Positions 10,259 to 64,000 of a stretch of 64,000 bases of DNA are shown here, piece by piece (positions within the stretch are counted from its first letter, which is position 1; each line of letters begins with the position of its first letter). Origin of the DNA: Antechinus flavipes. Taxonomy: Eukaryota. A program made the translations under genes and the position numbers. The stretch covers positions 262,570,001 through 262,634,000 of the forward strand of contig NC_067403.1 in NCBI RefSeq assembly GCF_016432865.1. Reading direction: 5' to 3'. The notes under the pieces are model-generated. The model did not search any database. It saw only the letters and a program-made list of their open reading frames with translations, and was not told the DNA's origin.

Positions 10259-10435
10259 CTTCTCGGTGTCCTCCTTCTTCACCTGCTTCAGGTTGGCTCT
10301 CAGGTCCATACACACCTTGTGCTTGGAGCCCAGCAGCGCCTTCAGCATGGCGTCAGCCGACATCCTCACCCTCCTCAGAGGAGGCCTCTTGAACTTGCCT
10401 CGAAGGTCAAAGAGCTTCTGGTTCATGTCTTCCAG
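10259..10435 (-). CDS. TNNI2: TNNI2 exon 7 ([31 protein letters not shown]...KKEDTEK), contains the inhibitory region
   Basis: 177 nt with AG/GT boundaries. Matches troponin I. Confidence 0.97.
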
Positions 10436-18042: not shown

Positions 18043-18255
18043 CTAGGGGCCCCTTTTCAGCGTCAGGGCCTGGTCCACCTCCTCGGGGGGCCGCAGTCTG
18101 TGCCACTGGGCCACGGGCCGCCGGGCCTGGGCCAGCATGTCCGACCAGTGGTGCAGCTGCTGCCCCGCGGCCCGGCCGCCCAGCAGGAGCTTCCCCAGGG
18201 GCCGGGCCCTGGACGCGCGGCCGCGGCCCCACACGGACACCAGCAGGTCCACGTT
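18043..18255 (-). CDS. SYT8: SYT8 last exon (NVDLLVSVW...HWSDMLAQARRPVAQWHRL...KRGP*)
   Basis: Synaptotagmin C2B end with the WHxL motif. Full CDS is 1161 nt = 386 aa over 8 coding exons. Confidence 0.93.
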   Translation of the reverse strand, partial: NVDLLVSVWGRGRASRARPLGKLLLGGRAAGQQLHHWSDMLAQARRPVAQWHRLRPPEEVDQALTLKRGP

Positions 18256-18331
18256 CTGGGGAGGAGACAGACCAGGCTCAGCCCCGCCCTCGGGAGCCCC
18301 GGCCCGGGGCCGCCTCTGCCCGGGAGCCCAC

Positions 18332-18465
18332 CTGGATCTGGCTGAAGGGCACGGGGAAGGCGAAGGCTTCGTTAAAGTAGGGGCTGCCCAAGCTGCTTTT
18401 CACCCCGGTTTTCTTCTTCTTCCATTTCTTCCCGTTCAGGAGGAGCTGAACCTTCACATAGGAAT
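18332..18465 (-). CDS. SYT8: SYT8 exon ([20 protein letters not shown]...[17 protein letters not shown])
   Basis: 134 nt, C2B polybasic stretch, AG/GT boundaries. Confidence 0.94.
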
Positions 18466-18535
18466 CTGGGGGGGGGGAAGCTGCTGAGCCCTGGGCCCCT
18501 TCCCGGCCCCCCCCCGGCCCGGCCGGACCCCCCAC

Positions 18536-18641
18536 CTGACAGCCCCTGCCGCAGGCCTCGAGCCTCCAGGATCACCACCGTCAGCCTCCCGGTGCTGGGC
18601 ACGTAGCGGAGGGAGAAGCAAAGCTCCCCCGTCTGCTCCTG
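18536..18641 (-). CDS. SYT8: SYT8 exon ([35 protein letters not shown])
   Basis: 106 nt, start of C2B, NAGNAG-type acceptor. Confidence 0.93.
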
Positions 18642-19236
18642 CTGCGGGGGGACAGAAGCGGGTCAGCGCCGCCTCCCGGGGCCCCCGTCTTCCCGCTCCG
18701 TGAACCGGGTGGAAGTAGCCTGTGCTCCCTGTGCCGCCATCGGGCCGATCCTCCTGGGGCCAGACCGGGGGAGTCCCCGCTGCTCCTGCCATCTCGGGGC
18801 CTCTCTCAGGCCTTGCCGGTGACCCCGCTCCCCCCCTGCCCCCCTTTTTGTGGGGGCGTCCCCTCCTGCCCCCGGGGGCCCCTCACGTCCTGGCTCCGGC
18901 TCCTCCCTGGAGCCTTCTCTGGCCCCCAGGACCACAAGCTCCCCCGGAGAAACCCCCATCTGGCCCCTCTTCTATCTGGTGACGTCCTACTGAGGTGCAG
19001 AGGGGGAAGGCCCTGAGGGGTCCTGGCCAATCCCAGGTGGGCTCAGCTTCTCACTGGCCTTCCCTTTATGCCGCGGATGCTGGGACCGTGGAGGACGCGC
19101 TCCCTCCCATGGGCTGCTGGGCTTCACGCGGCTCCCAGGGCGGCTTTTCCCAAAGCCGAGTCCGGGGGTCCGGGGGGGAGTGAGCCAGGGGGGAGCGGGG
19201 GGCCCGGGGGCCTCAGAATGTGACCCCGAGTCTCAC

Positions 19237-19404
19237 CTGGGCCCCGCCGGGCGGCCCCAGCTCATACCACTGCTCCAGGACGTGCTGAAGGTCGCTCGTG
19301 CCCAGGGGGATCAGCAGCTCCCCGAGGGGCGGCTGGCAGGAGAAGCGGTGGAAATCCAGGACCTGGATCACCAGCAGGGCCTCGGGGAGCTCCGCCTGGG
19401 GTAC
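19237..19404 (-). CDS. SYT8: SYT8 exon (VPQAELPEALLVIQVLDFHRFS...WYELGPPGGAQ)
   Basis: 168 nt, second half of C2A. Confidence 0.94.
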
Positions 19405-19518
19405 CTGAGGGGAAGCGGGGGGAGCCCCAGAATTCGCCTCCCGGCCCCAGTCTGCCAGTGCCCCCACACCAGCCCCCCGGCTCTGGGCACCGCCGCCTCC
19501 CCACCCCCCGAGCTCTAC

Positions 19519-19686
19519 CTGGAAGACGCAGCTCTCGTTGAAGACGGGGCCCAGGGTCTGCCGGTGCACCTTGGTCTCGTGGACCCTCCGGGGGTCCGAC
19601 CTCAGGTAGATCCTGGCGTAGGGGTCGGCCAGGCCCGTGGCCTGCAGGGCCCTCAGATCGGCCGCCTGCTTCAGGCCGACCCTCAG
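19519..19686 (-). CDS. SYT8: SYT8 exon (LRVGLKQAADL...DPYARI...HETKVHRQTLGPVFNESCVFQ)
   Basis: 168 nt, first half of C2A. Confidence 0.94.
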
Positions 19687-19840
19687 CTGGGGGAGAGGAG
19701 GACCCTCAGACCCGAGGAGGGGGGGACCCCGTGTCCTCGCAGCCCTCTCCTGGGTCCCTCCGGCCTCCAGCAGCCAGAGGAGGAAGGTCCCCGCCCGCTT
19801 CTTCACAGAGAAGAGTCCTCCCGGGGTCGCCGTCACCCAC

Positions 19841-19936
19841 CTCCTGGCTCCGGAAGTTGTATTCTAGGGAGACCTGCAGCCGCCCCCTCCTGGGCTCCTC
19901 CAGCCCCAGCGCCACGTCGTCCAGCTCGGGCTGCAC
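19841..19936 (-). CDS. SYT8: SYT8 exon (VQPELDD...GRLQVSLEYNFRSQE)
   Basis: 96 nt, linker and start of C2A. Confidence 0.92.
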
Positions 19937-20014
19937 CTGCGCCGGAGGAAGCCCGAGGATCGATCCCCCTTCTGGCTCCGGGAGAAGCCCCCAGTCTGGG
20001 GACCGAGAGCACCA

Positions 20015-20856
20015 ATGTGGGGCACTCGCTCCCACAGGCACTCACCAGATGGGCACTCACTCCCATGGGCATTCACTCCTGCGGGCACTTGCTCCCACGG
20101 GCACTCACCAGGTGGGCACTCACTCCCATGGGCACTTGCTCCCACGGGCATTCACTCCTGCGGGCACTCACCAGGTGGGCACTCTCTCCTGTGGGCACTC
20201 ACCAGGCGGGCACTCGCTCCCGCGGGCACTCACCAGGCGGGCACTCACTCCCACGGGCACTCACCAGGTGGGCACTCACCAGGTGGGCACTCACTCCCGC
20301 GGGCACTCACCAGGTGGGCACTCACTCCCGTGGGCACTCACCAGGTGGGCACTCTCTCCTGTGGGCACTCACCAGGTGGGCACTCACTCCCACAGGCACT
20401 CACTCCCGCGGGCACTCACCAGGTGGGCATTCACTCCCACAGGCACTCGCTCCCATGGGCACTCACCAGGTGGGCACTCACTCCCATGGGCACTCACCAG
20501 GCAGGCACTCGCTCCCGCGGGCACTCACCAGGTGGGCACTCACTCCCACGGGCACTCACCAGGTGGGCACTCACTCCCACGGGTACTCACCAGGTGGGCA
20601 CTCACTCCCGCGGGCACTCACCAGGTGGGCACTCACTCCCACAGGCACTCGCTCCCATGGGCACTCACCAGGTGGGCACTCGCTCCCATGGGCATTCACT
20701 CCTGCGGGCACTCACCAGGTGGGCACTCACTCCCACGGGCACTCACCAGGTGGGCACTCGCTCCCGCGGGCACTTGCTCCCACGGGCATTCACTCCCGCG
20801 GGCACTCACCAGGTGGGCACTCGCTCCCACGGGCATTCACTCCTGCGGGCACTCAC
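20015..20856. repeat. Minisatellite of 15/16-bp variant units (gggcactcaccaggt / gggcactcactcccac) filling a SYT8 intron
   Basis: Direct reading. The unit equals the adjacent exon/intron junction. Confidence 0.95.
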
Positions 20857-21023
20857 CAGGTGGGCGCTGGTGGCGCTGGAGGCCGTGGCCAGGCCCACCG
20901 TCTCCTTCTTCACACCCTTCTTCCTTCGCCGCCGCCGGCGCCAGCAGCAGACCGCGCAGAGCAGGCAGGAGGCCAGCAGGAAGGCAGCTCCCCCGAGGAC
21001 AGTGACGAGCAGCCACCAGGGCA
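20857..21023 (-). CDS. SYT8: SYT8 transmembrane exon (PWWLLVTVLGGAAFLLASCLLCAVCCWRRRRRRKK...AHL)
   Basis: 167 nt encoding a TM helix, Cys cluster and basic stop-transfer run, as in human SYT8. Confidence 0.92.
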
Positions 21024-21176
21024 CTGTTGGGGGGGAGAGAGCTGGGCCCCCGAGCCGGCTCCACCTCCACACTCAGGGCCCCGCACGGGGGGAAACAGGT
21101 TTGGAAAGCAGGGGGGCTCAGCCACGGTCACAGCGCCCAGGGCAGGGCCCCCCCCAGCACCGGCCCGAGAACTCAC

Positions 21177-21285
21177 GGGGAGTCTTGTCCCAGACGTCGG
21201 GGGAGGGTCCGGGTGTGGCCCGGCTCTGAGCAGGGGAGGGGGACGCAGCAGGAGGGCCGGGGCTGGTCTGATTGACCAGAGTCAT
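21177..21285 (-). CDS. SYT8: SYT8 first coding exon (MTLVNQTSPGPP...DVWDKTP)
   Basis: accATG Kozak and gtgagt donor. Phase 1 matches the next exon. The sequence is poorly conserved, so this is less certain. Confidence 0.75.
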
Positions 21286-22239
21286 GGTCCTGGGCCTCCC
21301 GGGGGGACACACGGTCCTGGAGCGGCCCTGAGCCAGCGCCCCCTGGGGGAGGGTCAGCAGGGGCCGGCGGCAGAGCCAGGGACCCCAGGAGGCGAGCAAG
21401 GAGGAGGGCAAAGGGCAGGGACGGCGCTGTCCCTGCCAGCCGGGCCCCGGGCACTGGTCACAGGAGATGGCGCGACCCGTCCGGGCACCCGGCAGGGAGG
21501 CCCATGTCCCCGGGCGGGGGCAGCAGGCGTGGGGGAGGAGGCTCCCCTGGAGCGTTCCTGGTGGCTGAGTCAGGCGCCCCGCCCTCGCAGCCCGGGGCCA
21601 GGGGGGGGGGGCAAATGGTCCCAGCCCCACAAAGCAGGAGAAAGGTCCCGGGCGCCGTCCCCCGCAGGGCAGGGCCCAGATCAGAGCCCCGAGGCCCGGC
21701 CGTGGGAACTTTGCCCTCCTTCCCCCGTCCCCCTGCGCTCCCTATCGGCCCCCGGTGTTTGCCGGGCGGGCGGCTCCCGGCCTTCGCGAATGGCACCTCC
21801 CGCCGTGCGGGACAGAGGGCTGGGGGGCCCGGGGGCGGGCAGCGGGGGCCGAGCCTCCTCGGGGCCGGACGATTTGGGGGCGACTCCCAGCATCCACGGG
21901 GCCCGGACCCACCTCCCCGGCCTTGCTTGTTCCCTGCCTCCCCCCCTGCCCCCTCCCTAGCGTGAGGGTCTCCCGCCCGCTGCCCCGGGGATCCTGTCTG
22001 CCGGGCGTCCCCACCCCGCCCTGGGAATCCAAGGCCGGGGCTCTCCCCTTCCTCCCAGCAGACTCCAGGGCGAGCACCCGGGACACCCGATGGCCACCCT
22101 TCCTCTCCCTCCTGGTCGGTTTATTGCAGCCTTTGGTGCCTCCAGAGGAAGCCTCAGGGCGGCCTCTGCCAGGGGGGCTCAGGGGCGGGGGAAGGGGCTG
22201 GGGGGGGCGCTCAGCTGGGCTGCTCCGGCTGGTAGAGGT

Positions 22240-22590
22240 GGGCTCAGGGAGGACTCAGGGGTCAGGGAGGACTCAGGGAGGACTCCGGGCTCAGGGAGGA
22301 CTCCAAGCTCAGGGAGGACTCCGGGCTCAGGGAGGACTCCAAGCTCAGGGAGGACTCCAAGCTCAGGGAGGACTCAGGGGTCAGGGAGGGCTCAGGGCTC
22401 GGGGAGGACTCCAGGCTCAGGGCTCAGGGAAGGCTCAGGGCTCAGGGAGGGCTCAGGGCTCAGGGAGGACTCCAAGCTCAGGGAGGACTCCGGGCTCAGG
22501 GAGGACTCCAGGCTCAAGGAGAGCTCCGGGCTCAGGGAGGGCTCAGGGCTCGGGGAGGACTCCAGGCTCAGGGAAGGCTCAGGGCTCAGA
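22240..22590. repeat. About 19-bp minisatellite (ctcagggaggactccgggc variants)
   Basis: Direct reading. Confidence 0.9.
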
Positions 22591-23810
22591 GCTCCCTTGG
22601 CCTCCTGGGCTGCCCTGAGGAGCTGCATGGCTGGAGCTGGGGGCCCCAGGCTGCCCTTCCCCGGCCTCCGGCCAAACTGGAAATTCTTCTCTGGAAGGGG
22701 GATGGGGAAGGTCCTGGAGGGGCCCCACCTCAAGGCCCGGAAGTCCTGAACCCTTGGGAGCCGGGGAACTCCCTGGACTAGCAGGCCCTGCAGGGGTCCA
22801 AGGGGGCGGGTTCTGGGGTCCCTTCCAGGACCCGGACAAGGGAAAAGGGGGTGGGAAGACATTTCTGAACATCTTAGCTTCAAATCTGTGGGCCCTGAAG
22901 CCTGGGTCAATGTGGGGAGCAGCGGGTGGGGCTGTCTGGAAGGAGGGGTCCCCCTCTGTCTCCCAGTGGCTGAGGTTCTTGGGGGTCCCAGACTTCTCAG
23001 GTAGAGAGGATTTTCTCTTCCCTCCCCAGCTCCAGCTCCAGCCCCAGGCCCGATGCCCGCGTCTCCCTGCCCGATGCCCATTTCTGCCCGGCCCCAGTGG
23101 GTGATCCACACTGAGCCGCTTCTCCCACGCCTCCCTCCCCCTGCCCTCGGAGCCCGGCAGCGGCTCCTGCCCAGGGGCCCTAGTTTGTGGAGCGGGACGG
23201 TTTTCTCGCACTGGACGCGGGGGCGCAGGCGTGTGGGTGGGTGGGCACTGCCGGGCCCCAGGCACCTCCGGCCCTCCCGTTTTCTTCCTCTGGCTCTGGG
23301 GGTGACCGCCCTGTGACACAGGCTGGGCCGGGGGAGGGGGAGACGGATGGCCGTGCGGGCAGACATGGCGGCGGAGGCGGGCGGGAGGCCGGGGGGATGA
23401 TCTACGGCTGTGCCTGCGGCCTGGCCGGGAGACACCCTGCTGGCTGGGGGGGGGGAGGCAGGAGATATGTGGTCACCTGGGGGGCTGCACAGCTGGGGCT
23501 GGGGGAGGGGGGGGTCTTGGCAGCCAAGGCCCTGCCCCGGGCCCCAGGAGAGTGGGGAGCTCTGGCTGGGCTGCCACGTCCCAGCCCGGTGGGTGGGCCG
23601 AGTGGGCTGCAGGACAAGGAAGCAGTCTTCTCGGGAGACCCCCCCCATCCAGCCGGCACAGACCGGACCCTTGTCTGTCCATCTGCCAATCACTGGCCCG
23701 ACCCGAACCCCCAGCAGCCTCTGCTCCTGGGGACGGCCGGCCCCCTGCCCTGCACTCAGCTAGCCTGGGGACCGGGGACGCCCTGGGACGGTCCCTGGGA
23801 CAGAACAGAC

Positions 23811-24110
23811 TCCATTTGTCCTTTTGTCTGTTCCTGGGAGACACTGTCCCATTTGTCGTTTGTTCCTGGGAGAGACTGGACCCCATTTGTCAGTTTGTCT
23901 GTTCCTAGGAGACACGGGCCCCTTTGTCAGTTTGTCCGTCTGTTCCCGGGAGACACGGGCCCCTTTGTCAGTTTGTCCGTCTGTTCCCGGGACACACGGC
24001 CCCCTTGGTCGGTTTGTCCGTCTGTCCCGGGAGACACGGGCCCCTTTGTCAGTTTGTCCGTCTGTTCCCGGCCCCTTTGTCAGTTGGTCTGTTCCTCATT
24101 TGTCCGTCTC
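23811..24110. repeat. About 41-bp tandem repeat (gtttgtccgtctgttcccgggagacacgggcccctttgtca)
   Basis: Direct reading, about 7 degenerate copies. Confidence 0.8.
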
Positions 24111-24594
24111 TGGGACAGCCCGGATCCCCTTTGTTTATCTGACTGTTCCTGACGCAGACTGGAGCTCCCTCTGTCTGTCCATCTGCCTACTTCCTTCTGT
24201 CCAGTTTCCTGCTTCTGCCCTCAACTGCACGTCTTTCTCTGGCCATTCAGCCAGGCCCGGAGAGACACTGAGTCCGCCCGTCCAGCTCTCTGGATTCCGT
24301 TTGTCCGTCAACCATCTGTGCCCGGGACTATCCCCTTTGTCCATGTGTCCCCGAGAAGCCCCCGGGCTGATCAGGTTGTCTCTTTGTCCGCCCAGTTGGA
24401 CTCGGTGAGAGACCGGCCCAGTCTGTCCGTGTGTCTGCTCCCGGGACCGGCTGGATTCCATTTGCTGCTCCAGCTCTCTGCCCCTGGAAGGGTCCATTTG
24501 TCCATCGGTCCGTCTGTCCCTGGGAAGCTGAAGCCTATTTTTCTGTCTGCTCCTGGTCATGAGCATCTGTCTGTGAGCAAAGCTCTGGAGCCGG

Positions 24595-24815
24595 ATCTGT
24601 CTGTCTGTCCCCACCAGCCCGTGACCCCGGCCATCTGCCTGTTCCCGGCCCCCCCAACCCTGCGCCCTGGCCATCTGTCTGTCCGTCCCACGCCCCCGGC
24701 TGTCCCTCTGTCCATCCTCTCCAGCCCGTGCCCCCGGCCATCCATCTGTCCGTCCCACGCCCCCGGCCATCCCTCTGTCCGTCTCCACCAGCCCGTGCCC
24801 CCGGCCGTCCCTCTG
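24595..24815. repeat. Degenerate 30-35-bp tandem repeat (ccccggccatccatctgtccgtccca)
   Basis: Direct reading. Confidence 0.6.
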
Positions 24816-24889
24816 CCCGTTCCCAGCCCCCTCCCCCTGGCTCGGGGACAGCCCGTACCCCATCCATCTCGCCGCGTCCCGGAGGCACA

Positions 24890-25292
24890 TTCCTGGGCTT
24901 GGGCGCGAGCCAAAGCAAACCCCCGGTGGCCGCCTCTGCGGAAGCCCCCGCGGCGGGTGGGGGGCCCGCGGTGCAGGGATGGGCAGGGGCAGGAAGGGGC
25001 GGCGAGCCCTGCGCTCAAAGCCACCTTTTCATAAGCGGTGATTAGGCACCGGGCCCGGCTCCGTCCCGGCCCGGCCCCGAGCCCGTCTGTCCGGCCCCGA
25101 CCGCAGCGGGCGGGCCCGGCGCCCACCGCGACTCCCAGACTGCAGGCTCGGCGTGCCTGGGGAGGGACGGGACTGCCCCCCCCCCCCGGCCGCCCCACCC
25201 CCACCTGCTTCCTGGAAGCCGGCGTGGGAGGGGCACCTTTCGGCTCCTGCAGTTGGCGGTAGGAGGGAGCCCCCGCCTGTGGCCTGGTGAGT
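24890..25292 (+). promoter_or_regulatory. Candidate CpG-rich promoter and 5'UTR exon of the cN-I-like gene (donor CTG|gtgagt at 25287)
   Basis: CpG-rich with GC boxes, TATA-like TTCATAAG near 25028 and a strong donor. The next exon has an acceptor at 26184 upstream of its ATG. Inferred only. Confidence 0.35.
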
Positions 25293-26210
25293 CCCGGCCG
25301 GGGCCCCCAGAGGGTCTTTTCCCTCCAATCCAGCCCCCGGGGGGCCCCTCCCCAACTAACCCTGTGGCCCCGAGCCCCCCCCCCAAGAGCAGCTTTACTC
25401 CCCACGTCACCTCAGCCAGGGCCGTGGGTGGTGGGCGGGAAAAGGGGCCCCGAGCCCGGGGGCGGGTGGGGGCTGAGGGAGGGGGGCGGGGGAACCTCTG
25501 CGTCCTGCTGGGCCTGGCTCCCAGGGCCGGAAAGGGGAGGCTGGGGGTGCACTTTCACTTTAGGGCGGGCGGGAGAAGCTGAGGCTAAGTTCTGGGTCTG
25601 CCGCTTCCCTGGGGAGGGGGCCTCTCTCTCTGGGCCCTCTCCCCCCGGGGCCAGAACAAGGGGTCTCTGAGGTGAAGCCCCGAGCCCGCCCCCCTCCCCC
25701 CCGCAGCACCCGCCCCTCCCCCTGCAGAACCGGCCCCGCCCGGCCCCTTCCGGGTTTGCTAAGTGTCTGACACTCCAGGCTGAGGGACTGGTCCCAGACC
25801 CACTTTACACGTGAGGGAAACTGAGGCAGCCTTTTACTAGCTCGCTCAGGGGTCCCGCGGCCGCTCAGCGTGGGAGGGAGAGCGGGGCTCGCGGGCTCCA
25901 AGGCCAAAGTTAGTGCGGCTGCTCGGGCGGGGCCACAGCCTCCCGTCCCCAGCCCTCGGGGACTCCGGCCTCCCCCGGCTCCCATCCTGGGCCTCCCCTC
26001 CCGGCCGGGCCCCCCCCCCCGAAGCCCCGCCGGGGTCTGCCCAGCCCGGGAGTGTGTCTGGGAGGCCGTGTGGGCACGAGTGAGTGAGTGAGGGAGAGCC
26101 CAGGACTGACTTGGGCTCTCTCTGTTGAGTCCTCCCCAGAAAGGAGCGTCCCGGCATCCCCTCAGGGCCCCTCTGTGCCCCCAGACTCCTCTTCTCCCTC
26201 CCTCGGGGCC

Positions 26211-26255
26211 ATGGCAGCTCCGGAGGCCGTGATCCTCAACCCTGACGTGGCCCAG
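26211..26255 (+). CDS. cN-I (NT5C1)-like gene, coding exon 1 (MAAPEAVILNPDVAQ)
   Basis: gccATGG Kozak and CAG|gtgagt donor. Phase 0 matches exon 2. No homology support for this short exon. Confidence 0.65.
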
Positions 26256-26579
26256 GTGAGTGGGGGCGCTCCCCCCCCCCAGATCACCCGGGCCCTCGGA
26301 GGAAGACGAGGTGCTGCTGGAGGCCCGGAGAGGGGCAGGAGGGAGGGCGGAGCCCCCGGGCCCTTCCCCAATGAGGGGCTTAATACGTAAAACAGTCCTT
26401 GGGGGCCAAGGGAATCCGCCCCATTCGGACAAGGCGTTTCCCGGGTGGAGAGGCTGTTTCAGCCCCAGCCAGGCAGAGGGGAGGGCTGGGCAGTCAGGCA
26501 GCATCGCCCAGCGGCTCCGGGTCCGAGCCATGGTCCGGGGCCACGAAAGGGCCAGAGGGAGGAGACTGTCCTGAGGCAG

Positions 26580-26805
26580 CCCTGACCTTGGGGCTCTTAA
26601 CCTGAAGGGGAGACGGGCCCTGACCTCGAGGTTCTTAGTCTGAAGAGGAGATGGGCCCTGACCTCGAGGCTCTTAGTCTGAAGGGGAGATGGGCCCTGAC
26701 CTCGGGGCTCTTAGTCTGAAGGGGAGATGGGCCCTGATCTTGGGGCTCTTAGTCTGAAGGGGAGATGGGCCCTGACCTCGGGGCTCTTAGTCTGAAGGGG
26801 AGCCG
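26580..26805. repeat. 38-bp tandem repeat, 6 copies (ccctgacctcggggctcttagtctgaaggggagatggg)
   Basis: Direct reading. Confidence 0.92.
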
Positions 26806-26921
26806 GGGCCTCAGTCTGCCAGGACCCCCATAGCCTTGCGGGGCGCCCGGGAGGCGGGGGGGGAGCAGGGCTCTCGGGAAGCCTGGGCCGAGCCGGGTGC
26901 GCCGCCTCTGGGCCCCTGCAG

Positions 26922-27089
26922 AAGGACCCTCGGGAAGCGCTGGTCGTGGCGGTCACTGCCAGAGCCACCTTCGACCTGGAGGCGGAGCACCAGCTGTTCC
27001 TGGCCCAGGGCCCGGAGGAGTACACCAAGTACCAGAGGGAGCACGCCACGGAGCCGCTGCCCCCGGGCACAGCCTTCCCCTTCATCCAG
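26922..27089 (+). CDS. cN-I-like exon 2 (KDPREALVVAVTARATFDL...EPLPPGTAFPFIQ)
   Basis: 168 nt, the same length and phase as NT5C1A exon 2 as I recall it. Homologous to NAVTIAVSSRALF...PGPAFPFVK. Confidence 0.9.
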
Positions 27090-27380
27090 GTGCTGGCGGG
27101 GCTGGGGGGGGAGGAGCCCGGGCCGGCCCTCGGCTCTGGCAGGACATGGAGCGCCGGGAAAGCCCCCCTCCCTGCCCCCTCCCTGCCCCTCTCTTCCCAT
27201 CACCCTCACAGCAGGGGGCCTCTGGCGCCCCCCCGCCCCCTCCTCTGGCAGGCCCTGGGCTGGCCTTTCCTGCCCCAGCTCCCCCAGCCCCCCAGGGAGG
27301 ATGGAGAGGCCTGTGGGCCTGGGGAGGCCGAGGAGCTGGCGGGCCCGGCCCAGAGCTCACCCCGCTCTCGCCGGCACTAG

Positions 27381-27510
27381 GCGGTGCAGCTGGTCAATCA
27401 GAGGCTGCTGGAGCGGGACCCGCAGGAGCGAGGTCTCCTGGACGTCATGGTCCTCTCCAACAACAGCCCGGAGGCCGGCAGGAGGATCGTCCACTGCGCC
27501 AGGCAGGCGG
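27381..27510 (+). CDS. cN-I-like exon 3 (AVQLVNQRLL...DVMVLSNNSPEAGRRIVHCARQA)
   Basis: 130 nt, tag acceptor and gtgaga donor. Homologous to AVNRRL...DIVLMTNNHAQVG. Confidence 0.88.
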
Positions 27511-28115
27511 GTGAGAGGAAAGCCCGGGGGAGGCCAATGGGGAGGATCCCGGGGGGGGCTGATGGGGAGGACCCCCCTCCACCTAACACAGCCCCCAAGG
27601 CCTTGCACCCGGCCCTTCCCCAGAGCTCCGGGCCCAGGCAGATCCCAGGAGGCTTCAGCCAGCCTTGGTCCTGCCTCCCTGCGGCCTTCAGCCCAGACCC
27701 GGCCTCCCTCGGGGACCAAGCCTCTGCCCCTGGAATGAAGGGGGCCGGGCCCCAGCCAGGGCAGGGCTCCGGAGAGCGGGGGGCCGGGGACCCCGAGCCA
27801 GAGCTTCGGCCCCAGACTCCCGGCCCGCTGGCTCAGGGGAATGGGGGGGCGGGGGGGCACAGAGGCAGGAAGCCTCGCTCAGGCTCCGCTCAGGGCTTTG
27901 GTCCAGGTTGCCAGAAACTGGCCGGACTATCACGCCTTCCCTTTACAGAGGAGGAAACTGAGTCCTAGAGAGGCGGGGCTTGCCCAGGAGCACTTGCCCC
28001 GGCAGTTCCCTTTGACCTCCTGCTCCGGGCCGGCCCTGACAGAGCCGGGGCATGTGGGGGGCGCTCCCTGCCTGGGGGAGGGGGGAGCCCTCCAAAATGG
28101 CCGCCTTCCTCCCAG

Positions 28116-28238
28116 GCCTGGAGATCTCCAAGTTCTGCTTCGTCAGCGCCGAGGACTCCACCCAGTACCTCCGGGAGCACAACGTGGGGCTCTTTCTGTC
28201 CGCAGACAGGACCGACGTCTGCAACGCCCTGAAGAGGG
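28116..28238 (+). CDS. cN-I-like exon 4 (GLEISKFCF...YLREHNVGLFLSAD...ALKR)
   Basis: 123 nt with AG/GT boundaries. Homologous to IERFCM...YLKAYHTNLYLSAD. Confidence 0.9.
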
Positions 28239-28871
28239 GTGAGCCCTTCCCCGCGCCGGACCCCCCCGCCCAGGTCTGCCCGCTCCCGGAGGCTCCTGGG
28301 CCGGCCTCCCCTCCGCTGCCTTCCTTCCTGTGACAGGAAACTGCTGTGGGCCCCGGGGGAGGGAGGAGGGGGCACAGACCGAGGGGCCCCAAGGCTGGAC
28401 TTCAATGGGAGTCTTGGTCTCCAAATCCGGGGCTTTTTCCCACACCTCATGGCAACAAGCATTTATTAAGCACCTCCTGTGTGCCGGGGGACCGAGGGGA
28501 CTGCCGTGTGATGGGGGAGGAAGAGGGGTGCCCCAAAGCTGGCTGTGGCCGAAGGGGCCCTGGAGGATCCCAGAGACTCGGGAGAACGGCCGGAGGGGGG
28601 GGGCTGCGACAGGAAGCCTCTCCCTCTGCTCCCTGGGGCCGGCCCTGGGGTCTCCCAGTGGGTGCTCTGGCTTTTCTAGGGCTTTGGGGGGTGGTACAGA
28701 GGAGGCAAATCTCGGCCGTCCCGGAGGATCTGCAACCGGGGAACCCCCAGCTCCGAGAAAGGGGGGATCTGGCTGGGGCGAGGGCTGTGGGGGACCAGGG
28801 CTTGCGCAGTCCTCGGACCAAGTCCTTGGGCCCGGCCTCCATGGGCCGCCCCGCTTGTGCGCTGCCCGACA

Positions 28872-28963
28872 GCGCCATCTTGTGGCTGCTGGGGTCCGTG
28901 CAGCCGGCGGTGCCAGGCACCGGATGCTGAGTGAGGAGGGGAGGCAGAGCCGCCAGGGGGCGC
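28872..28963. promoter_or_regulatory. Divergent CTCF motif pair: CCACAAGATGGCGC (-, 28872-28885) and CCGCCAGGGGGCGC (+, 28950-28963)
   Basis: Near-consensus CTCF core motifs read directly from the sequence. Binding is not shown. Confidence 0.6.
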
Positions 28964-29142
28964 CACGGGGCGCAGAGAGCCAGCCTTAGCCTCGGGAGTT
29001 CGCACTCCAGCTCCGACCCCCTGACAGTCTCTTTGCCTGCTGGCCTCAGTTTCCTCATCCGTCAGATGGCATCCTCTCCGCGCCGAGACTGTGGCGAAGG
29101 CCAGGGAGCCGGCGGATGTGAGGCGCTGGGCCAGCCCGCGGC

Positions 29143-29650
29143 TCCCCAGCCCCGAGCCTCCCCAGCCCCCGGCCTCCTCAGCCTCCGGCCTCCCCAGCCC
29201 CCGGCCTCCTCACGCCCGCGGCCTCCCCAGCCCCCCAGCCCCCGGCCTCCCCAGCCCCCCAGCCCCCGGCCTCCTCACGCCCGCGGCCCTCTCAGCCCCC
29301 GGCCTCCTCATGCTCGCGGCCTCCCCAGCCTCTGGCCTCCCCAGCCCCCGGCCTCCTCATGCTCGCGGCCTCCCCAGCCTCTGGCCTCCCCAGCCCCCGG
29401 CCTCCTCACGCCCGCGGCCTCCTCAGCCTCCGGCCTCCCCAGCCCCCGGCCTCCCCAGCCTCCGGCCTCCCCAGCCCGCGGCCTCCTCAGCCTCCGGCCT
29501 CCCCAGCCCCCGGCCTCCCCAGCCTCCGGCCTCCCCAGCCCGCGGCCTCCTCAGCCTCCGGCCTCCCCAGCCCCCGGCCTCCCCAGCCCCCGGCCTCCTC
29601 ACGCCCGCGGCCTCCCCAGCCTCTGGCCTCCCCAGCCCGCGGCCTCCTCA
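29143..29650. repeat. 16-bp C-rich CpG minisatellite, about 32 copies (ggcctccccagccccc variants), abutting the exon 5 acceptor
   Basis: Direct reading. Confidence 0.93.
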
Positions 29651-29674
29651 CACCCACAACCTCTGTGTCCCCAG

Positions 29675-29853
29675 GGGTCCCCGCCGCCCTCCTTTTCCAG
29701 CAGGAGGTCCAGGCGCCCAGCACCCAGCTGCGCTTGGCCTTCGACGGGGACGCCGTGCTCTTCTCGGACGAGACGGACCGGGTCTTCCGGGAGCGGGGGC
29801 TACAGGGGGCCGCGGAGTATGAGAAGGCCCTGGAGGCCGTGCCCATCGGAGAC
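29675..29853 (+). CDS. cN-I-like exon 5 with HAD motif I (QLRLAFDGDAVLFSDETD)
   Basis: 179 nt, ccccag acceptor and gtaggt donor. The catalytic DxD is intact. Confidence 0.93.
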
Positions 29854-29955
29854 GTAGGTGGCGGCCCCGCCCGGGCCGAAGCTCCGCGCCCCCTGGGAGG
29901 GGGGAGGGTCCGGAGGACCCCGAGGCCACGCCCTCATCCCTGTCTCCGCCTCCAG

Positions 29956-30258
29956 GGGCCGCTGAAAGCCTTCGCCCTGCGGCTGGGGCGGCTGCGCGAC
30001 AAGTTCGGGCCCGAGGACTCCCCGGTGCGCACCTACCTGGTCACGGCGCGCAGCCGCGGGGACATGAGCGTGCGCGCGCTGAACACCCTGCGGGCCTGGG
30101 GGCTGCGGCTCGACGAGGTCTTCTTCATGGACGGCGCCCCCAAGGGACCCACGCTGGCCCGCGTCCGCCCCCACATCTTCTTTGATGACTCCATGTCCAA
30201 CATCCGGGGGGCTCAGGACGCCGGCGTCCCCTCCGCCCTGGTGCCCTGTGACTGCTGA
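29956..30258 (+). CDS. cN-I-like exon 6 (RTYLVTARS...GAPKGP...RPHIFFDD...VPCDC*)
   Basis: 303 nt with HAD motifs II-IV intact. Full CDS is 948 nt = 315 aa with no stops or frameshifts. Confidence 0.93.
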   Translation, partial: GPLKAFALRLGRLRDKFGPEDSPVRTYLVTARSRGDMSVRALNTLRAWGLRLDEVFFMDGAPKGPTLARVRPHIFFDDSMSNIRGAQDAGVPSALVPCDC

Positions 30259-30504: not shown

Positions 30505-32930
30505 GGGTGGGGGAAAGGAGGGAGAGAGGCTTTTATTAAGTGTCTGCTGTGTGCCAGAAACAGTGTGGGGGAAAGGAGGGAGAGAGGCTTTTATTAAGTG
30601 TCTGCTGTGTGCCAGAAACAGTGTGGGGGAAAGGAGGGAGAGAGGCTTTTATTAAGTGTCTACTGTGTGCCAGAGACAGTGTGGGGGAAAGGAGGGAGAG
30701 AGGCTTTTATTAAGTGTCTGCTGTGTGCCAGAAACAGTGGGGGGAAAGGAGGGAGAGAGGCTTTTATTAAGTGTCTGCTGTGTGCCAGAAACAGTGTGGG
30801 GGAAAGGAGGGAGAGAGGCTTTTATTAAGTGTCTGCTGTGTGCCAGAAACAGTGTGGGGGAAAGGAGGGAGAGAGGCTTTTATTAAGTGTCTACTGTGTG
30901 CCAGAAACAGTGTGGGGGAAAGGAGGGAGAGAGGCTTTTATTAAGTGTCTGCTGTGTGCCAGAAACAGTGTGGGGGAAAGGAGGAGAGAGGCTTTTATTA
31001 AGTGTCTGCTGTGTGCCAGAAACAGTGTGGGGGAAAGGAGGGAGAGAGGCTTTTATTAAGTGTCTACTGTGTGCCAGAAACAGTGTGGGGGAAAGGAGGG
31101 AGAGAGGCTTTTATTAAGTGTCTGCTGTGTGCCAGAAACAGTGTGGGGGAAAGGAGGGAGAGAGGCTTTTATTAAGTGTCTGCTGTGTGCCAGAAACAGT
31201 GTGGGGGAAAGGAGGGAGAGAGGCTTTTATTAAGTGTCTACTGTGTGCCAGAGACAGTGTGGGGGAAAGGAGGGAGAGAGGCTTTTATTAAGTGTCTGCT
31301 GTGTGCCAGAAACAGTGTGGGGGAAAGGAGGGAGAGAGGCTTTTATTAAGTGTCTGCTGTGTGCCAGAAACAGTGTGGGGGAAAGGAGGGAGAGAGGCTT
31401 TTATTAAGTGTCTGCTGTGTGCCAGAAACAGTGTGGGGGAAAGGAGGGAGAGAGGCTTTTATTAAGTGTCTACTGTGTGCCAGAAACAGGGTGGGGGAAA
31501 GGAGGGAGAGAGGCTTTTATTAAGTGTCTGCTGTGTGCCAGAAACAGTGTGGGGGAAAGGAGGGAGAGAGGCTTTTATTAAGTGTCTGCTGTGTGCCAGA
31601 AACAGTGTGGGGGAAAGGAGGGAGAGAGGCTTTTATTAAGTGTCTACTGTGTGCCAGAGACAGTGTGGGGGAAAGGAGGAGAGAGGCTTTTATTAAGTGT
31701 CTGCTGTGTGCCAGAAACAGTGTGGGGGAAAGGAGGGAGAGAGGCTTTTATTAAGTGTCTGCTGTGTGCCAGAAACAGTGTGGGGGAAAGGAGGGAGAGA
31801 GGCTTTTATTAAGTGTCTGCTGTGTGCCAGAAACAGTGTGGGGGAAAGGAGGGAGAGAGGCTTTTATTAAGTGTCTACTGTGTGCCAGAAACAGTGTGGG
31901 GGAAAGGAGGGAGAGAGGCTTTTATTAAGTGTCTGCTGTGTGCCAGAAACAGTGTGGGGGAAAGGAGGGAGAGAGGCTTTTATTAAGTGTCTGCTGTGTG
32001 CCAGAAACAGTGTGGGGGAAAGGAGGGAGAGAGGCTTTTATTAAGTGTCTACTGTGTGCCAGAAACAGTGTGGGGGAAAGGAGGGAGAGAGGCTTTTATT
32101 AAGTGTCTGCTGTGTGCCAGAAACAGTGTGGGGGAAAGGAGGGAGAGAGGCTTTTATTAAGTGTCTGCTGTGTGCCAGAAACAGTGTGGGGGAAAGGAGG
32201 GAGAGAGGCTTTTATTAAGTGTCTACTGTGTGCCAGAGACAGTGTGGGGGAAAGGAGGGAGAGAGGCTTTTATTAAGTGTCTGCTGTGTGCCAGAAACAG
32301 TGTGGGGGAAAGGAGGAGAGAGGCTTTTATTAAGTGTCTGCTGTGTGCCAGAAACAGTGTGGGGGAAAGGAGGGAGAGAGGCTTTTATTAAGTGTCTGCT
32401 GTGTGCCAGAAACAGTGTGGGGGAAAGGAGGGAGAGAGGCTTTTATTAAGTGTCTACTGTGTGCCAGAAACAGTGTGGGGGAAAGGAGGGAGAGAGGCTT
32501 TTATTAAGTGTCTGCTGTGTGCCAGAAACAGTGTGGGGGAAAGGAGGGAGAGAGGCTTTTATTAAGTGTCTGCTGTGTGCCAGAAACAGTGTGGGGGAAA
32601 GGAGGGAGAGAGGCTTTTATTAAGTGTCTACTGTGTGCCAGAAACAGTGTGGGGGAAAGGAGGGAGAGAGGCTTTTATTAAGTGTCTGCTGTGTGCCAGA
32701 AACAGTGTGGGGGAAAGGAGGGAGAGAGGCTTTTATTAAGTGTCTGCTGTGTGCCAGAAACAGTGTGGGGGGAAAGGAGGGAGAGCTTTTATTAAGTGTC
32801 TGCTGTGTGCCAGAAACAGTGTCGGGGGAAAGGAGGGAGAGCTTTTATTAAGTGTCTGCTGTGTGCCAGAAACAGTGTGGGGGAAAGGAGGGAGAGAGGC
32901 TTTTATTAAGTGTCTACTGTGTACCAGGCA
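30505..32930. repeat. 58-bp VNTR, about 42 near-identical copies (gggaaaggagggagagaggcttttattaagtgtctgctgtgtgccagaaacagtgtgg)
   Basis: Direct reading. It ends in an L2-type tail (tgtgtaccaggcacagcgct). Confidence 0.97.
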
Positions 32931-35822: not shown

Positions 35823-38800
35823 TTTTATAATTATAACTTTTTGTTGACAGAACCCATACTAGGGTAATTTTTACAGCATTATCCATTGCACTCGTTTCTG
35901 TTCCGATTTTTCCCCTCCACCCCCTCCCCCAGATGGCAAGCAGTCCTTTACATGTTGAATAGGTTACAGTATATCCTAGATACAATCTATGTGTGCAGAA
36001 CCGAACAGTTCTCTTGTTGCACAGGGAGAATTGGATTCAAAAGGTATAAATAACCTGGAAGAAAAACAAAAATGCAAGCAGTTTATATTCATCTCCCAGT
36101 GTTCTTTCTCTGGGTGTAGCTGCTTCTGTCCATCTTTGATCAATTAAGGCTCTCTTTACCGAAGAGATCCACTTCCATCAGAATACGTCCTCAAACAGTA
36201 TCGTTGGTGAGATATATAACGATCTCCCGGTTCTGCTCCCTTCCCTCAGCATCAGTTCCTGTCAGTCTCTCCAGCCTCTCTGGATTCCTCCTGCTGGTCG
36301 TTCCTTACAGAACAATAATATTCCATAACATTCATATACCACAATTTACTCAACCATTCTCCAATTGATGGGCATCCATTCATTTTCCAGCTTCTAGCCA
36401 CTACAAACAGGGCTGCCACAAACATTTTGGCACATACAGGTCCCTTTCCCTTCTTTAGTATCTCTTTGGGATATAAGCCCAATAGAAACAGTGCTGGATC
36501 AAAGGGTATGCACAGTTTGATAACTTTTGGGGCATAATTCCAGATTGTTCTCCAGAATGGTTGGATTCGTTCACAACTTAACCAACAATGCACCAGCGTC
36601 CCAGTTTTCCCACATCCCCTCCAACATTCATCATTATTTTTTCCTGTCATCTTAGCCAATCTGACAGGTGTGTAGTGGTATCTCAGAGTTGTCTTAATTT
36701 GCATTTCTCTGATCAATAGTGATTTGGAACACTCTTTCATATGAGTGGAAATAATTTCAATCTCATCATCTGAAAATTGTTCATATCCTTTGACCATTTA
36801 TCAATTGGAGAATGGCTTGATTTCTTAAAAATTAGAGTCAATTCTCTATATATTTTGGAAATGAGGCCTTTATCAGAACCTTTAACTGTGAAGATGTTTT
36901 CCCAGTTTGTGGCTTCCCTTCAAATCTTGTTTGCATTAGTTTTGTTTGTACAAAGGCTTTTTAATTTGATGTAATCAAAATTTTCTATTTTGTGATCAGT
37001 AATGGTCTCTAGTTCATCTTTGGTCACAAATTTCTTTCCCCTCCACAAGTCTGAGAGATAAACTATCCTATGTTCCTCTAATTTATTTTTAATCTCGTTC
37101 TTTATGCTTAAATCATGGATCCATTTTGATCTTATCTTGGTATATGGTGTTAAGTGTGAGTCAATGCCTAATTTCTGCCATACAAATTTCCAGTTATCCC
37201 AGCAGTTTTTGTCAAATAATGAATTCTTATCCCAATAGTTAGGAACTTTGGGTTTGTCAGACACTAGATTGTTATAGTTGACTTGTGAACCTAACCTATT
37301 CCACTGATCAATTAATCTATTTCTTAGCCAATACCACATGGTTTTGGTGACTGCTGCTTTATAATATAGTTTTAGATCAGGCACAGCTAGGCCGCCTTCA
37401 TTTGATTTTTTTTCATTAATTCCCTTGAGATTCTCAACCTTTTGTTCTTCCATATGAATTTTGTTGTTATTTTTTCTAGATCATTAAAATATTTTCTTGG
37501 AAGTCTGATTGGTATAGCACTAAATAAATAGATTAGTTTAGGGAGTATTGTCATCTTTATTATATTCACTCAGCCTATCCAAGAGCATTTTATATTTTCC
37601 AATTATTTAAATCTGACTTTATTTGTGTGCAAAGTTTTTTGTAATTTTGCTCATATAATGCCTAACTTTCCTTTGGTAGATAGATCCCCAAATATTTTAT
37701 GCTATCGACAGTAATTTTGAATGGAATTTCTCTTTGTATCTCTTGCTGTTGGATTTTGTTGGTGATGTATAAAAATGCTGAGGATTTATGGGGATTTATT
37801 TTGTATCCTGCAACTTTGCTAAAGTTATGAACTATTTCTAATAGCTTTTTAATAGAATCTCTGGGGTTCTCTAAGTATATCATCATATCATCTGCAAAGA
37901 GTGATAGTTTGGTTTCCTCATTGCCTATTCTAATTCCTTTAATCTCTCTGCTTATTGCAAGGCTAGCGTTTCTAATACAATATTGAATAATAAGGTGATA
38001 GTGGGCAACCTTGCTTCACTCCAGATCTTACTGGGAAAGGTTCCTGTTTTTCCCCATTGAATATGATGCTTATTGACGGTTTCAAACATATGCTCATGAC
38101 TATTTTAAGGAAAAGTCCATTTATTCCTATACTCTCAAGGGTTTTTATTAGGAACGGATGTTGGATTTTATCAGATGTTTTTTCTGCATCTATTGAGATG
38201 ATCATATGGCTTTTGTTAGTGTGGTTATTGATATAGTCAATTATGCTAATAGTTTTCCTAATATTGAACCAGCCCTGCATTCCTGGTATAAATCCTACTT
38301 GGTCATAGTGTATTATCCTGGGGATGATTTTCTGTAATCTTTTTGCTAATGTTTTATTTAAGATTTTAGCATCAATATTCATTAGGGAGATTGGTCTATA
38401 ATTTTCTTTCTCTGTTTTCAGCCTACCTAGTCTAGGTATCAGTACCATGTCTGTGTCATAAAAGGAATTTACTACGACTCCTTCATTCCCTATTTTTTCA
38501 AATAGTTTATATAGCATTGGAGTTAATTGTTTTTTAAATGTTTGGTAGAATTCACATGTAAATCCATTTTGTCCTGGGGATTTTTTCTTAGGGAGTTGGT
38601 TAATAGCTTGTTCTATTTCTTTTTCTAAAATGGGACTGTTTAGTCTATTTACTTCTTCCTCTGTTAATCTGGGCAAGCTATATTTTTGAAGGTATTCTTC
38701 CATTTCATATAAGTTGTCGAATTTATTGGCATAAAGTTGGGCAAAGTAACTCCTAATTATTGCTCTAATTTCCTCTTCATTAGTGGCAAGTTCTCCCTTT

Positions 38801-40660
38801 TCGTTTTTAAGACTAACAATTTGATTTTCCTCTTTCAAATCAGATTTCAACTCTTAGTTTTATTAATTAATTCAATAGTTTTTTACTTTCAATTTTATTG
38901 ATCTCTCCTTTTATTTTTAGAATTTCAAGTTTAGTGTTTGACTGGGGGGTTTTAATTTGTTCCTTTTCTAGCATTTTTAGTTGCAAGTCCAATTCACTGA
39001 CCTTCTCTTCCTCTATTTTATGCAAGTAGGCCTCTAGAGATATGAAATTTCCTCTTACTACTACTTTGGCTGCATCCCACACATTATGGTATGACATCTC
39101 ATTATTTTCATTTTCTTGGGTGAAGTTATTAATTATGTCGATGATTTGCTGTTTCACCCAATCATTCTTTAGTATGAGATTATTTAGTTTCCAATTATTT
39201 TTTGGTCTATTTTCCCCTGGCTTATTGTTAAATGTAATTTTCATTGCATCGTGGTCTGAAAAGGATGCATTTACTATTTCTGCCTTACTGCATTTGAATT
39301 TGAGGTTTTTACATCCTAATATATGGTCAATTTTTGTATAGATTCTATGAACTGCCTAGAAGAAAGTGTACTCCTTTCTGTCTCCATTTAGTTTTCTCCA
39401 GAGATCTACCATATCTAACTTTTCTAGTATTCTATTTACCTTTTTGACTTCTTTCTTATTTATTTTGTGATTTGATTTATCTAAATCTGAGAGTGCAAGG
39501 TTGAGATCTCCCACTATTATAGTTTTGCTGTCTATTTCTTCTTGCAGCTCTCTTAATTTCTCTTTTAAGAATTTAGATGCTACATCACTTGGTACATATG
39601 TGTTTAATATTGATATTGCTTCATTATCTATGCTTCCCTTTAGCAAGATATAGTGCCCTTCCTTATCTCTTTTAATTAGATCAATTTTTGCTTTTGCTTG
39701 ATCTGAGATCAAGATGGCTACCCCTGGTTTTTTGACTTCACCTGAAGCATAGTAGATTCTGTTCCAATCTTTTATCTTTACTCTGTATGTAGTTCCCTGA
39801 TTCAGGTATGTTTCCTGTAAACAATATATTGTAGGATTCTGGCTTTTAATCCATTCTGCTAACCGCTTCCTCTTTATGGGGGAGTTTACCCCCATGTCAA
39901 TAAATTAACATTTATTGTTAAAATTACCAATTCTATATTACTTGCCATCTTGTTAACCCCTGTTTATGCTTTTCTCTCTTCCTTACCCCTTATCCCCCTC
40001 CCCAGTATTAAACTTGTGAGCACCACTTGCTAGTCACAGCCCTCCCTTTTTAGTATCCCTCCTCCTCCCCTCCCCCTTAGAGTTCCTCCTCCTGTCTTAC
40101 TCCTTTTCCTCAAAGTTTCTGTATTCCCTTCCCTTTTCACTTTTTCCTTCCCACTTTTCAGTGAGGGAGAAAGTTTACCATAAATTGAATTTGTCTAAAA
40201 TTTTTCTCTTTAAGCCAATTCTGATGGCAGTAAAATACCCACTATATTCATCCCCCTCCATTCTTTCTCTCAGATATAATAGGTTTCCTTTGCCTCTTCA
40301 TGAGATGTGGTACCCCCACTTTACCCTTTTTCTGGTACAATTTCCTTTCCACCTTTGGTTTCTAGAACAAGGTATACATGTATTCTTTAAATATAGAAAT
40401 ATACTTCCCAAGATTTCTTTTTGCCTTTTTAGGTTTCTCTTGAGTTCTATATTTATAGATCAAACTTTTTGCTAAGTTCTGTTTTTTTCATCAAAAATAG
40501 ATGAAATTTGCTTATTTTGTTGAATGTCCATCTTCTTCCTTGGAAAAAGATGCTCATTCTAGCTGGGTAAGTTATTTTTGGTTGCATACCGAGTTCCTTA
40601 GCCTTTCGGAATATCATATTCCAGGCCTTTCGATCATTTAATGTGGACACTGCTAGATCA
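35823..40660 (-). mobile_element. Large L1, truncated within ORF1: ORF1 C-terminus, ORF2 endonuclease and RT, 3'UTR; disrupted
   Basis: Fragmented ORFs with GVNSPIKRKRL (endonuclease), [14 protein letters not shown] and [10 protein letters not shown] (RT), and KITYPARMS (ORF1). Multiple stops and frameshifts. Confidence 0.95.
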
Positions 40661-63350: not shown

Positions 63351-63529
63351 AGGCTGCTCCAGGCTGGGCGGGGCCTGGGGAAACTGAGCCCGGAGGAAGG
63401 GGGGAGGCTGCAATGCCCCCCCCAGGTTGGAAGAGGGGTTCACCCCCGGGAGGGAGCCCAGGTCCTGGGGCAGGTGGGGCTGGACCCAGCCTCCTTGTCC
63501 TGAGGCCCCTGCAGCAGCTGAGGCAGGAG

Positions 63530-63732
63530 AGGGAGGGAGGCTGCTCTGCCCCTGGGGGGGGGGAGGGAGGGAGGCTGCTCTGTCCCTGGGGGGGGGAGAG
63601 GGAGGGAGGCTGCTCTGTCCCTGGGCCTGGGGGGGGGGGGGAGGGAGGGAGGGAGGCTGCTCTGTGGGGGGGGGGGGGGGGGAGGCTGCTCTGTCCCTGG
63701 GGGGGGGGGGCAGGAGAGGGAGGCTGCTCTGC
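63530..63732. repeat. G-rich, about 36-40-bp tandem repeat, about 6 copies, in CTSD intron 1
   Basis: Units of ggagggaggctgctctgtccctggggggggg. Confidence 0.8.
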
Positions 63733-64000
63733 CCCTATGAGCTTCCTCCTGAGCCGACTTCTGGAAAGGCTGGGGTGGAGGCCAGAGCCTTCCTTGGCCT
63801 TCCTCCCAGACCGGGTGACCTTGAGCAGGCGCCCCTGGCAGCCTGAATGGGCCCTCCGGGGCCGCAGCCCCTCCCCTCCAATCAGTTCCTCTCCGAGCCC
63901 CAGGAGCTGCCAAGGTCACGGGGCTGAGGTTCATGGGGGGGGGGGGGGCAGGGATCATGGTTGGGCCCAAACGGGGCCTTGAAGGCCGGGTCAGGCCTCT

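Follow-up and report, generated by a model that had tools for sequence, protein, structure and literature searches.

The sequence analysed was a 64,000-nucleotide (nt) stretch of Antechinus flavipes DNA (contig NC_067403.1, positions 262,570,001 to 262,634,000 of the forward strand), referred to below as the window. The gene under study lies on its plus strand at 26211-30258 and encodes a protein of the cytosolic 5'-nucleotidase I (cN-I) family, which falls outside the two known branches of that family, NT5C1A and NT5C1B. Its exons and introns were reconstructed from the letters of the window, giving the following parts:

exon 1, 26211-26255, plus strand: 45 nt; start codon and 15 codons, phase 0 donor; also 45 nt in Dromiciops and pigeon
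exon 2, 26922-27089, plus strand: 168 nt; PF06189 begins here, and the exon alone matches Pfam at E = 3.3e-16; equal in length and phase in koala NT5C1A
exon 3, 27381-27510, plus strand: 130 nt; phase 1 donor; also 130 nt in koala NT5C1A, pigeon and Dromiciops
exon 4, 28116-28238, plus strand: 123 nt, phase 1-1; matches Pfam on its own; internal alternative acceptor AG at 28204-28205
exon 5, 29675-29853, plus strand: 179 nt; HAD motif I (D179, D181)
intron 5, 29854-29955, plus strand: 102 nt, in frame and stop-free; the open reading frame 29359-30258 runs through it, and retention would add 34 amino acids
exon 6, 29956-30258, plus strand: 303 nt including the stop codon; HAD motifs II-IV (T245, K278, D292, D293)

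Each intron was bounded by GT...AG, with phases of 0,0,1,1,0, and the spliced coding sequence of 948 nt was translated to 315 amino acids (aa) and a stop codon, with no internal stops. The translation was identical at every residue to RefSeq XP_051823237-40 ("cytosolic 5'-nucleotidase 1A-like isoform X1", Antechinus flavipes), and the RefSeq locus of the XP_051823237 model matched window positions 16211-40258 exactly, which places the window on A. flavipes chromosome CM028222.1. The rebuilt exons thus reproduced both the RefSeq model and the six-exon, lesion-free 315-aa open reading frame (ORF) that had been read from the letters in the initial annotation of this DNA.

Family membership was established by a match to PF06189 (5'-nucleotidase) of 306.6 bits (cutoff 28.2) spanning residues 17-313, with single exons also matching separately. 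Four motifs of the haloacid dehalogenase (HAD) type had been reported as intact, and all four were found: FDGDAV (178-183), LVTAR (243-247), PKG (277-279) and FFDD (290-293). Residues D179, D181, T245, K278, D292 and D293 were invariant in a 60-sequence alignment of NT5C1A, NT5C1B, the third clade described below (clade C) and distant outgroup homologues. An AlphaFold model produced from this alignment had a mean pLDDT (predicted local distance difference test score) of 92, and its fold agreed with those predicted by AlphaFold for cN-IA and cN-IB from human and mouse, at template modelling (TM) scores of 0.92-0.93 and a root-mean-square deviation of 1.4-2.2 Å, both sides of this comparison being predictions. 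By structural comparison of the model, the C-terminal half (~173-308) resembled solved HAD/DDDD phosphatases (AphA, deoxyribonucleotidase-type) and the N-terminal half (~19-171) was Rossmann-like, resembling universal stress proteins and small putative nucleotidases. No solved structure of a PF06189 protein was detectable by sequence search of the PDB.

Relatives of the window protein were named from an exhaustive HMMER search and a census with a clade-C profile, in which scoring was limited to the 8000 best word-sharing candidates. Identity over the full length was 81-85% to the other marsupial proteins named "1A-like", 67-70% to ~315-aa proteins of birds, turtles and squamates, 62% to those of salamanders and 53-56% to those of sharks and rays. 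To any NT5C1A or NT5C1B it was 41-46%, and to canonical NT5C1A 44-45%, which bears out the figure of ~45% earlier estimated by eye. Two maximum-likelihood trees were computed under the LG+C20+F+G4 model. The window protein was placed in a third clade, clade C, with support of 100/99* and 100/100* in the two trees, and the topology inside this clade followed the species tree. NT5C1A and NT5C1B formed a joint clade of their own that excludes clade C and to which the second tree adds lamprey and hagfish sequences (99/94*); the NT5C1B clade, which includes wombat and shrew 1B, likewise excluded the window protein. In these trees clade C split from the NT5C1A/NT5C1B lineage before 1A and 1B split from each other.

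The database names given to these proteins ('1A-like', '1A', '1B-like'), together with the exon sizes and phases held in common with NT5C1A, would fit a fast-evolving marsupial orthologue of NT5C1A (or NT5C1B) and no separate paralogue. This reading was refuted by the trees and by the approximately unbiased (AU) test, since forcing marsupial clade C together with NT5C1A cost 247 log-likelihood units (AU p = 5e-56) and the separate clade was recovered with 100/99-100 support. Marsupials also carry canonical copies beside those of clade C (NT5C1A in koala, NT5C1B in wombat), and the identity of 41-46% to 1A/1B stands against 67-70% to the clade-C proteins of birds and reptiles. We regard the probability of such an orthologue as negligible, and the gene is treated here as a separate paralogue. 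In one Monodelphis isoform named '1B-like', 661 aa long, a clade-C nucleotidase domain is preceded by ~360 additional N-terminal residues in which no Pfam domain was found; this model may result from read-through or mis-joining.

The exons of 45/168/130/123/179/303 nt and phases of 0,0,1,1,0 were identical in the window, Dromiciops and pigeon. The exons of koala NT5C1A measure 117/168/130/123/185/369 nt, with phases equal to those of the window gene, so the earlier statement that the lengths of exons 2-4 and the phases are those of NT5C1A holds when checked on this gene. Introns are present and exon sizes and phases run parallel to koala NT5C1A; the gene therefore arose by an old duplication at the DNA level and is not a retrocopy, as had been proposed.

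Clade C was found among fishes in elephant shark, sharks, rays, bichirs, sturgeons, coelacanth and lungfish, and among tetrapods in a caecilian, salamanders, turtles, alligator, tuatara, squamates, many birds and at least 8 marsupials. Among annotated database proteins no member was found in eutherians, monotremes, frogs, gar, bowfin or teleosts, despite many matches there to NT5C1A and NT5C1B. A candidate from the teleost Phyllopteryx was placed by the tree in NT5C1A and was rejected. Among annotated proteins, this distribution implies that the ancestor of jawed vertebrates had one such gene and that it was lost independently several times, once within mammals on the stem of eutherians or before it. 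The proposal of an ancient paralogue kept in marsupials and lost in eutherians accordingly stands as to the separate clade and the lack of a eutherian database protein, but the gene is not specific to marsupials, as most non-eutherian jawed-vertebrate lineages keep it.

In the outgroup-rooted tree clade C lay outside a group of hemichordate, brachiopod, lamprey, hagfish and 1A+1B sequences (hemichordate/brachiopod node 86/82, not starred). At 1.0-1.4 substitutions per site its stem is long, and it attaches straight to the long branch of the outgroup, which drew a warning from the tree tool; the marsupial stem is also long (0.5-0.6 substitutions per site). Because the long clade C stem joins the long outgroup branch, an origin in the first or second vertebrate genome duplication (1R/2R) with early acceleration cannot be told from a pre-vertebrate origin on this rooting.

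The marsupial stem length was also considered in relation to the possibility that the gene in Antechinus is a relic, silent or in decay, whose ORF is intact by chance and which is not expressed. Besides the long stem, the base composition would favour this, the G+C content at third codon positions (GC3) being 0.92 in a GC-rich context in which long open frames arise more easily by chance. Against it stand the following observations. The ratio of nonsynonymous to synonymous substitution (dN/dS) by NG86 was 0.15-0.22 in gapless codon alignments of Antechinus, Dromiciops, a didelphid and pigeon; NG86 values were used as YN00 failed or looked saturated at this GC3. A ratio near 1 had been named beforehand as a sign against the gene, and the measured values indicate purifying selection across the marsupials and pigeon. 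All splice pairs and all catalytic residues are preserved, the seven full-length marsupial proteins listed are all 315 aa long (7/7), and exon sizes are equal in the two marsupials that were mapped.

Transcription was assessed from public sequencing runs. A Logan contig of 1115 nt from run SRR12097547 holds the complete spliced 315-aa ORF, and the gene is therefore transcribed and spliced in an opossum, the didelphid label of this contig being given by its ≥90% cluster with Monodelphis only. Small Antechinus runs of unspecified library type (40-108 M letters) contained every sampled word (100%) from exon 6 and the 3' flank; this is a hint of expression and no more, random low-coverage DNA being an unlikely source. 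Metatranscriptome runs ('organism A') that held a constant 0.05-0.27 of the sampled words were judged to reflect shared low-complexity words and were not used. With several transcript isoforms also predicted for Antechinus in RefSeq, a relic is considered very improbable, and the gene is taken to be functional.

Among the predicted RefSeq isoforms, Antechinus X2 is 285 aa long, arises by use of the internal acceptor in exon 4 and lacks residues 115-144 (30 residues) of X1. In wallaby, turtles and birds, in-frame isoforms of 274 aa recur among the predictions. They are shorter by 41 aa, which corresponds to exon 4, and may be either an annotation artefact or a conserved alternative form whose N-terminal domain is incomplete. 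Repeats were seen in and beside the gene. Intron 1 contains a 38-bp repeat of ~6 copies (26579-26802), and intron 4 a GC-rich minisatellite with periods of 16/32/49 bp (29131-29650) whose translation is a long proline-rich ORF running on into exon 5. An array of a 58-bp unit repeated ~42 times at 97% identity (30507-32927; GC ~0.50, zero CpG) starts 250 bp past the stop codon and could lie in the 3' untranslated region or just beyond it.

Two neighbouring features were identified upstream of the gene:

18043-25985, minus strand: called gene with a C2 domain (PF00168), SYT8-like, head to head with the nucleotidase gene; the name SYT8 is given by position only
10259-10435, minus strand: exon for the inhibitory-peptide region of troponin I, belonging to the next upstream gene; motif match, PF00992 at E = 2.5e-22

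The upstream C2 gene is also present, arranged in the same way, in pigeon, Dromiciops, wombat and bilby, and the pigeon orthologue of the nucleotidase lies between the C2 gene and an aspartic-protease gene. In Anolis, Mobula and Heterodontus no neighbouring genes were seen within 10 kb where DNA was available. In chicken the published order on chromosome 5 (GGA5) is TNNT3, LSP1P1, TNNI2, SYT8, C5NT1AL, CTSD (PMC10525433). The order of troponin I, C2 and nucleotidase genes in the window matches the TNNI2-SYT8-C5NT1AL part of the chicken order TNNI2-SYT8-C5NT1AL-CTSD, the C2 gene being equated with SYT8 by position. No exons with CTSD catalytic motifs were found within the window by motif search. 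Of the location first given for the gene, between SYT8 and CTSD near TNNI2, the upstream side was thus recovered (C2 gene and troponin I exon), but no CTSD motif lies inside the window. Birds and marsupials have kept the gene next to the SYT8-like gene, and in birds CTSD flanks it on the opposite side.

Further observations were made around these genes. A chimeric Acipenser sinensis model (UNVERIFIED_CONTAM), in which PF06189 (residues 16-204) is fused to an aspartyl-protease N-terminus (206-284), is a hint that in sturgeon the clade-C nucleotidase gene has a CTSD-like gene next to it in the same orientation. The annotated start codon of the C2 gene is 225 bp from the nucleotidase ATG, head to head (25985-26211), and the C2 model of the window has 552 aa, whereas those of bilby, wombat and pigeon have 398-426 aa. 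Either a GC-rich bidirectional promoter serves both genes, or the C2 model reaches too far at its N-terminus. At 36252-39895 (minus strand), in an AT-rich block, several separate ORFs resemble fragmented pieces of ORF2 of LINE-1-type retrotransposons, as judged by eye from the translations. A block of GC 0.74 at the 3' end of the window (62000-64000) may be the CpG island before the next gene, which by position is CTSD.

HAD phosphatases work through an aspartyl-phosphate intermediate and require Mg2+. On this basis the window protein would be a soluble, Mg2+-dependent HAD-type phosphatase with its catalytic core in the C-terminal half (~173-308). Asp179 would attack the phosphate of a nucleoside 5'-monophosphate and form the aspartyl-phosphate intermediate, Asp181 would serve as general acid/base, and Thr245, Lys278, Asp292 and Asp293 would complete the phosphate and metal site. 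The N-terminal Rossmann-like half (~19-171) is a candidate allosteric nucleotide site, by likeness to the activation of cN-IA by ADP. Its most likely role would be to dephosphorylate purine monophosphates in striated muscle, yielding inosine from inosine monophosphate (IMP) and/or adenosine from AMP.

The published data that bear on this role concern the chicken gene. In a 2023 genome-wide association study, C5NT1AL was located in a 1-Mb region of chromosome 5 associated with breast-meat IMP, inosine and hypoxanthine, and was called uncharacterised (PMC10525433). In a 2026 study of chicken breast muscle, it was the transcript with the strongest correlation with IMP (r = -0.42), and its expression was positively correlated with inosine, hypoxanthine and guanosine (PMC13049307); it has been proposed as a candidate IMP-degrading enzyme (PMC10525433, PMC13049307). 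We consider it likely that the window gene is the functional Antechinus orthologue of chicken C5NT1AL, a member of a third ancient jawed-vertebrate cN-I branch (PF06189), and that its product dephosphorylates IMP or AMP in striated muscle.

Several points weigh against this assignment. The chicken functional evidence is correlational only, and hydrolysis of AMP followed by deamination would yield the same metabolite pattern as direct hydrolysis of IMP. Splicing and tissue expression in Antechinus itself are drawn from Gnomon isoforms and the small exon-6 runs of unspecified type. Loss of the gene in eutherians, frogs and neopterygian fishes appears to have occurred, as judged from the absence of proteins in databases and not from inspection of genomes. 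Clade C does not have the N- and C-terminal extensions of NT5C1A, and clade C differs from 1A/1B by fixed residues at 18 positions, several of them near motifs I and IV (e.g. T189, D190, Y204, M273, N297), so that substrate or regulation may differ from 1A/1B.

The last two points, and the length of the clade C stem, would also fit an active enzyme with a diverged job, acting on pyrimidine or deoxy-nucleotides or another phosphoester, or lacking ADP activation; the label of an adenosine- or inosine-producing muscle enzyme would then be wrong. In addition, cN-IA itself has a low Km for pyrimidine deoxynucleoside monophosphates (PMC10383617, review). Set against such a change of function, expression in chicken varies specifically with IMP, inosine, hypoxanthine and guanosine (PMC13049307), and the predicted fold is nearly superimposable on those of cN-IA and cN-IB. 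At six of the 18 diagnostic sites clade C retains the outgroup state, and 1A/1B may be the derived side there. A diverged activity is therefore judged unlikely, and the IMP/AMP-dephosphorylating role is preferred. Six further changes are fixed in marsupials at otherwise conserved sites, and these, with the 18 clade-C positions, are candidates for functional divergence.

A more far-reaching possibility, which we hold to be doubtful, is that clade C did not arise as a plain sister of NT5C1A/B in a vertebrate whole-genome duplication but is a pre-vertebrate or early-remodelled paralogue, maybe an IMP-selective nucleotidase of fast muscle beside TNNI2/TNNT3, and that its losses among eutherians, frogs and teleosts altered the disposal of muscle IMP.

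Only cN-IA and cN-IB appear in textbooks and reviews (a 2023 review of purine enzymes, PMC10383617, names these two alone) because such accounts are built on human and mouse. A third conserved cN-I is carried by most other jawed vertebrates. No description of a third cN-I clade or of its eutherian loss was found in the searchable literature, and 'NT5C1C' and 'cN-IC' also returned no relevant paper. The gene is already annotated (RefSeq '1A-like', chicken C5NT1AL) and is named in two poultry papers. The clade-C cluster in pigeon has no curated entry, and a canonical bird 1A of 358 aa exists; the classical pigeon-heart cN-I is therefore probably NT5C1A.

The finding is thus incremental, as the gene was annotated, the family and its chemistry are well known and the bird orthologue had already been named as a candidate. 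What appears to be unpublished is that the "1A-like" genes are one ancient clade outside NT5C1A+NT5C1B, together with the pattern of losses and the representation in marsupials. C5NT1AL is the leading candidate for the enzyme that determines how much IMP and inosine chicken breast muscle contains, a trait with economic relevance. Results obtained with NT5C1A are not simply transferable to a separate ancient clade, and purine metabolism in marsupials and birds may differ from the mouse model. It would also be a clear example of a metabolic gene that eutherians have lost.

Four known systems were compared with the window gene. It is like NT5C1A (cN-IA), the AMP-preferring, ADP-activated 5'-nucleotidase found in muscle and heart, in its Pfam family, six exons, phases, lengths of exons 2-4, catalytic residues and predicted fold (TM 0.93), and differs in sequence (44-45% identity), in its separate clade with 18 diagnostic positions and in its chromosomal neighbourhood; exons 1 and 6 of koala NT5C1A are 117 and 369 nt long, compared with 45 and 303 nt in the window gene, and both termini of the window protein are correspondingly shorter. 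With NT5C1B (cN-IB / AIRP) it shares family and fold (TM 0.92-0.93 to the mouse and human models), but identity is 40-46%, the 1B clade is sister to 1A, and the long N-terminal extension of mammalian 1B (573-614 aa in total) is absent here. AphA class B acid phosphatase and 5'(3')-deoxyribonucleotidase-type proteins align with the C-terminal half (probability 1.0) and have the DxD nucleophile motif; they differ in identity (14-20%) and fold (TM 0.3-0.5), and the known enzymes are without the N-terminal Rossmann-like half. The closest system is chicken C5NT1AL, which belongs to the same clade. Identity of the window protein to its counterparts in galliforms and pigeon is 67-70%, the pigeon gene has identical exon sizes and phases, and the C2 gene flanks the gene in both lineages, with an aspartic-protease gene downstream in pigeon; orthology to the chicken gene is drawn from its galliform relatives and the published gene order (PMC10525433). 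The marsupial lineage differs by its long stem and six fixed changes, and the correlations of expression with metabolites belong to the chicken gene.

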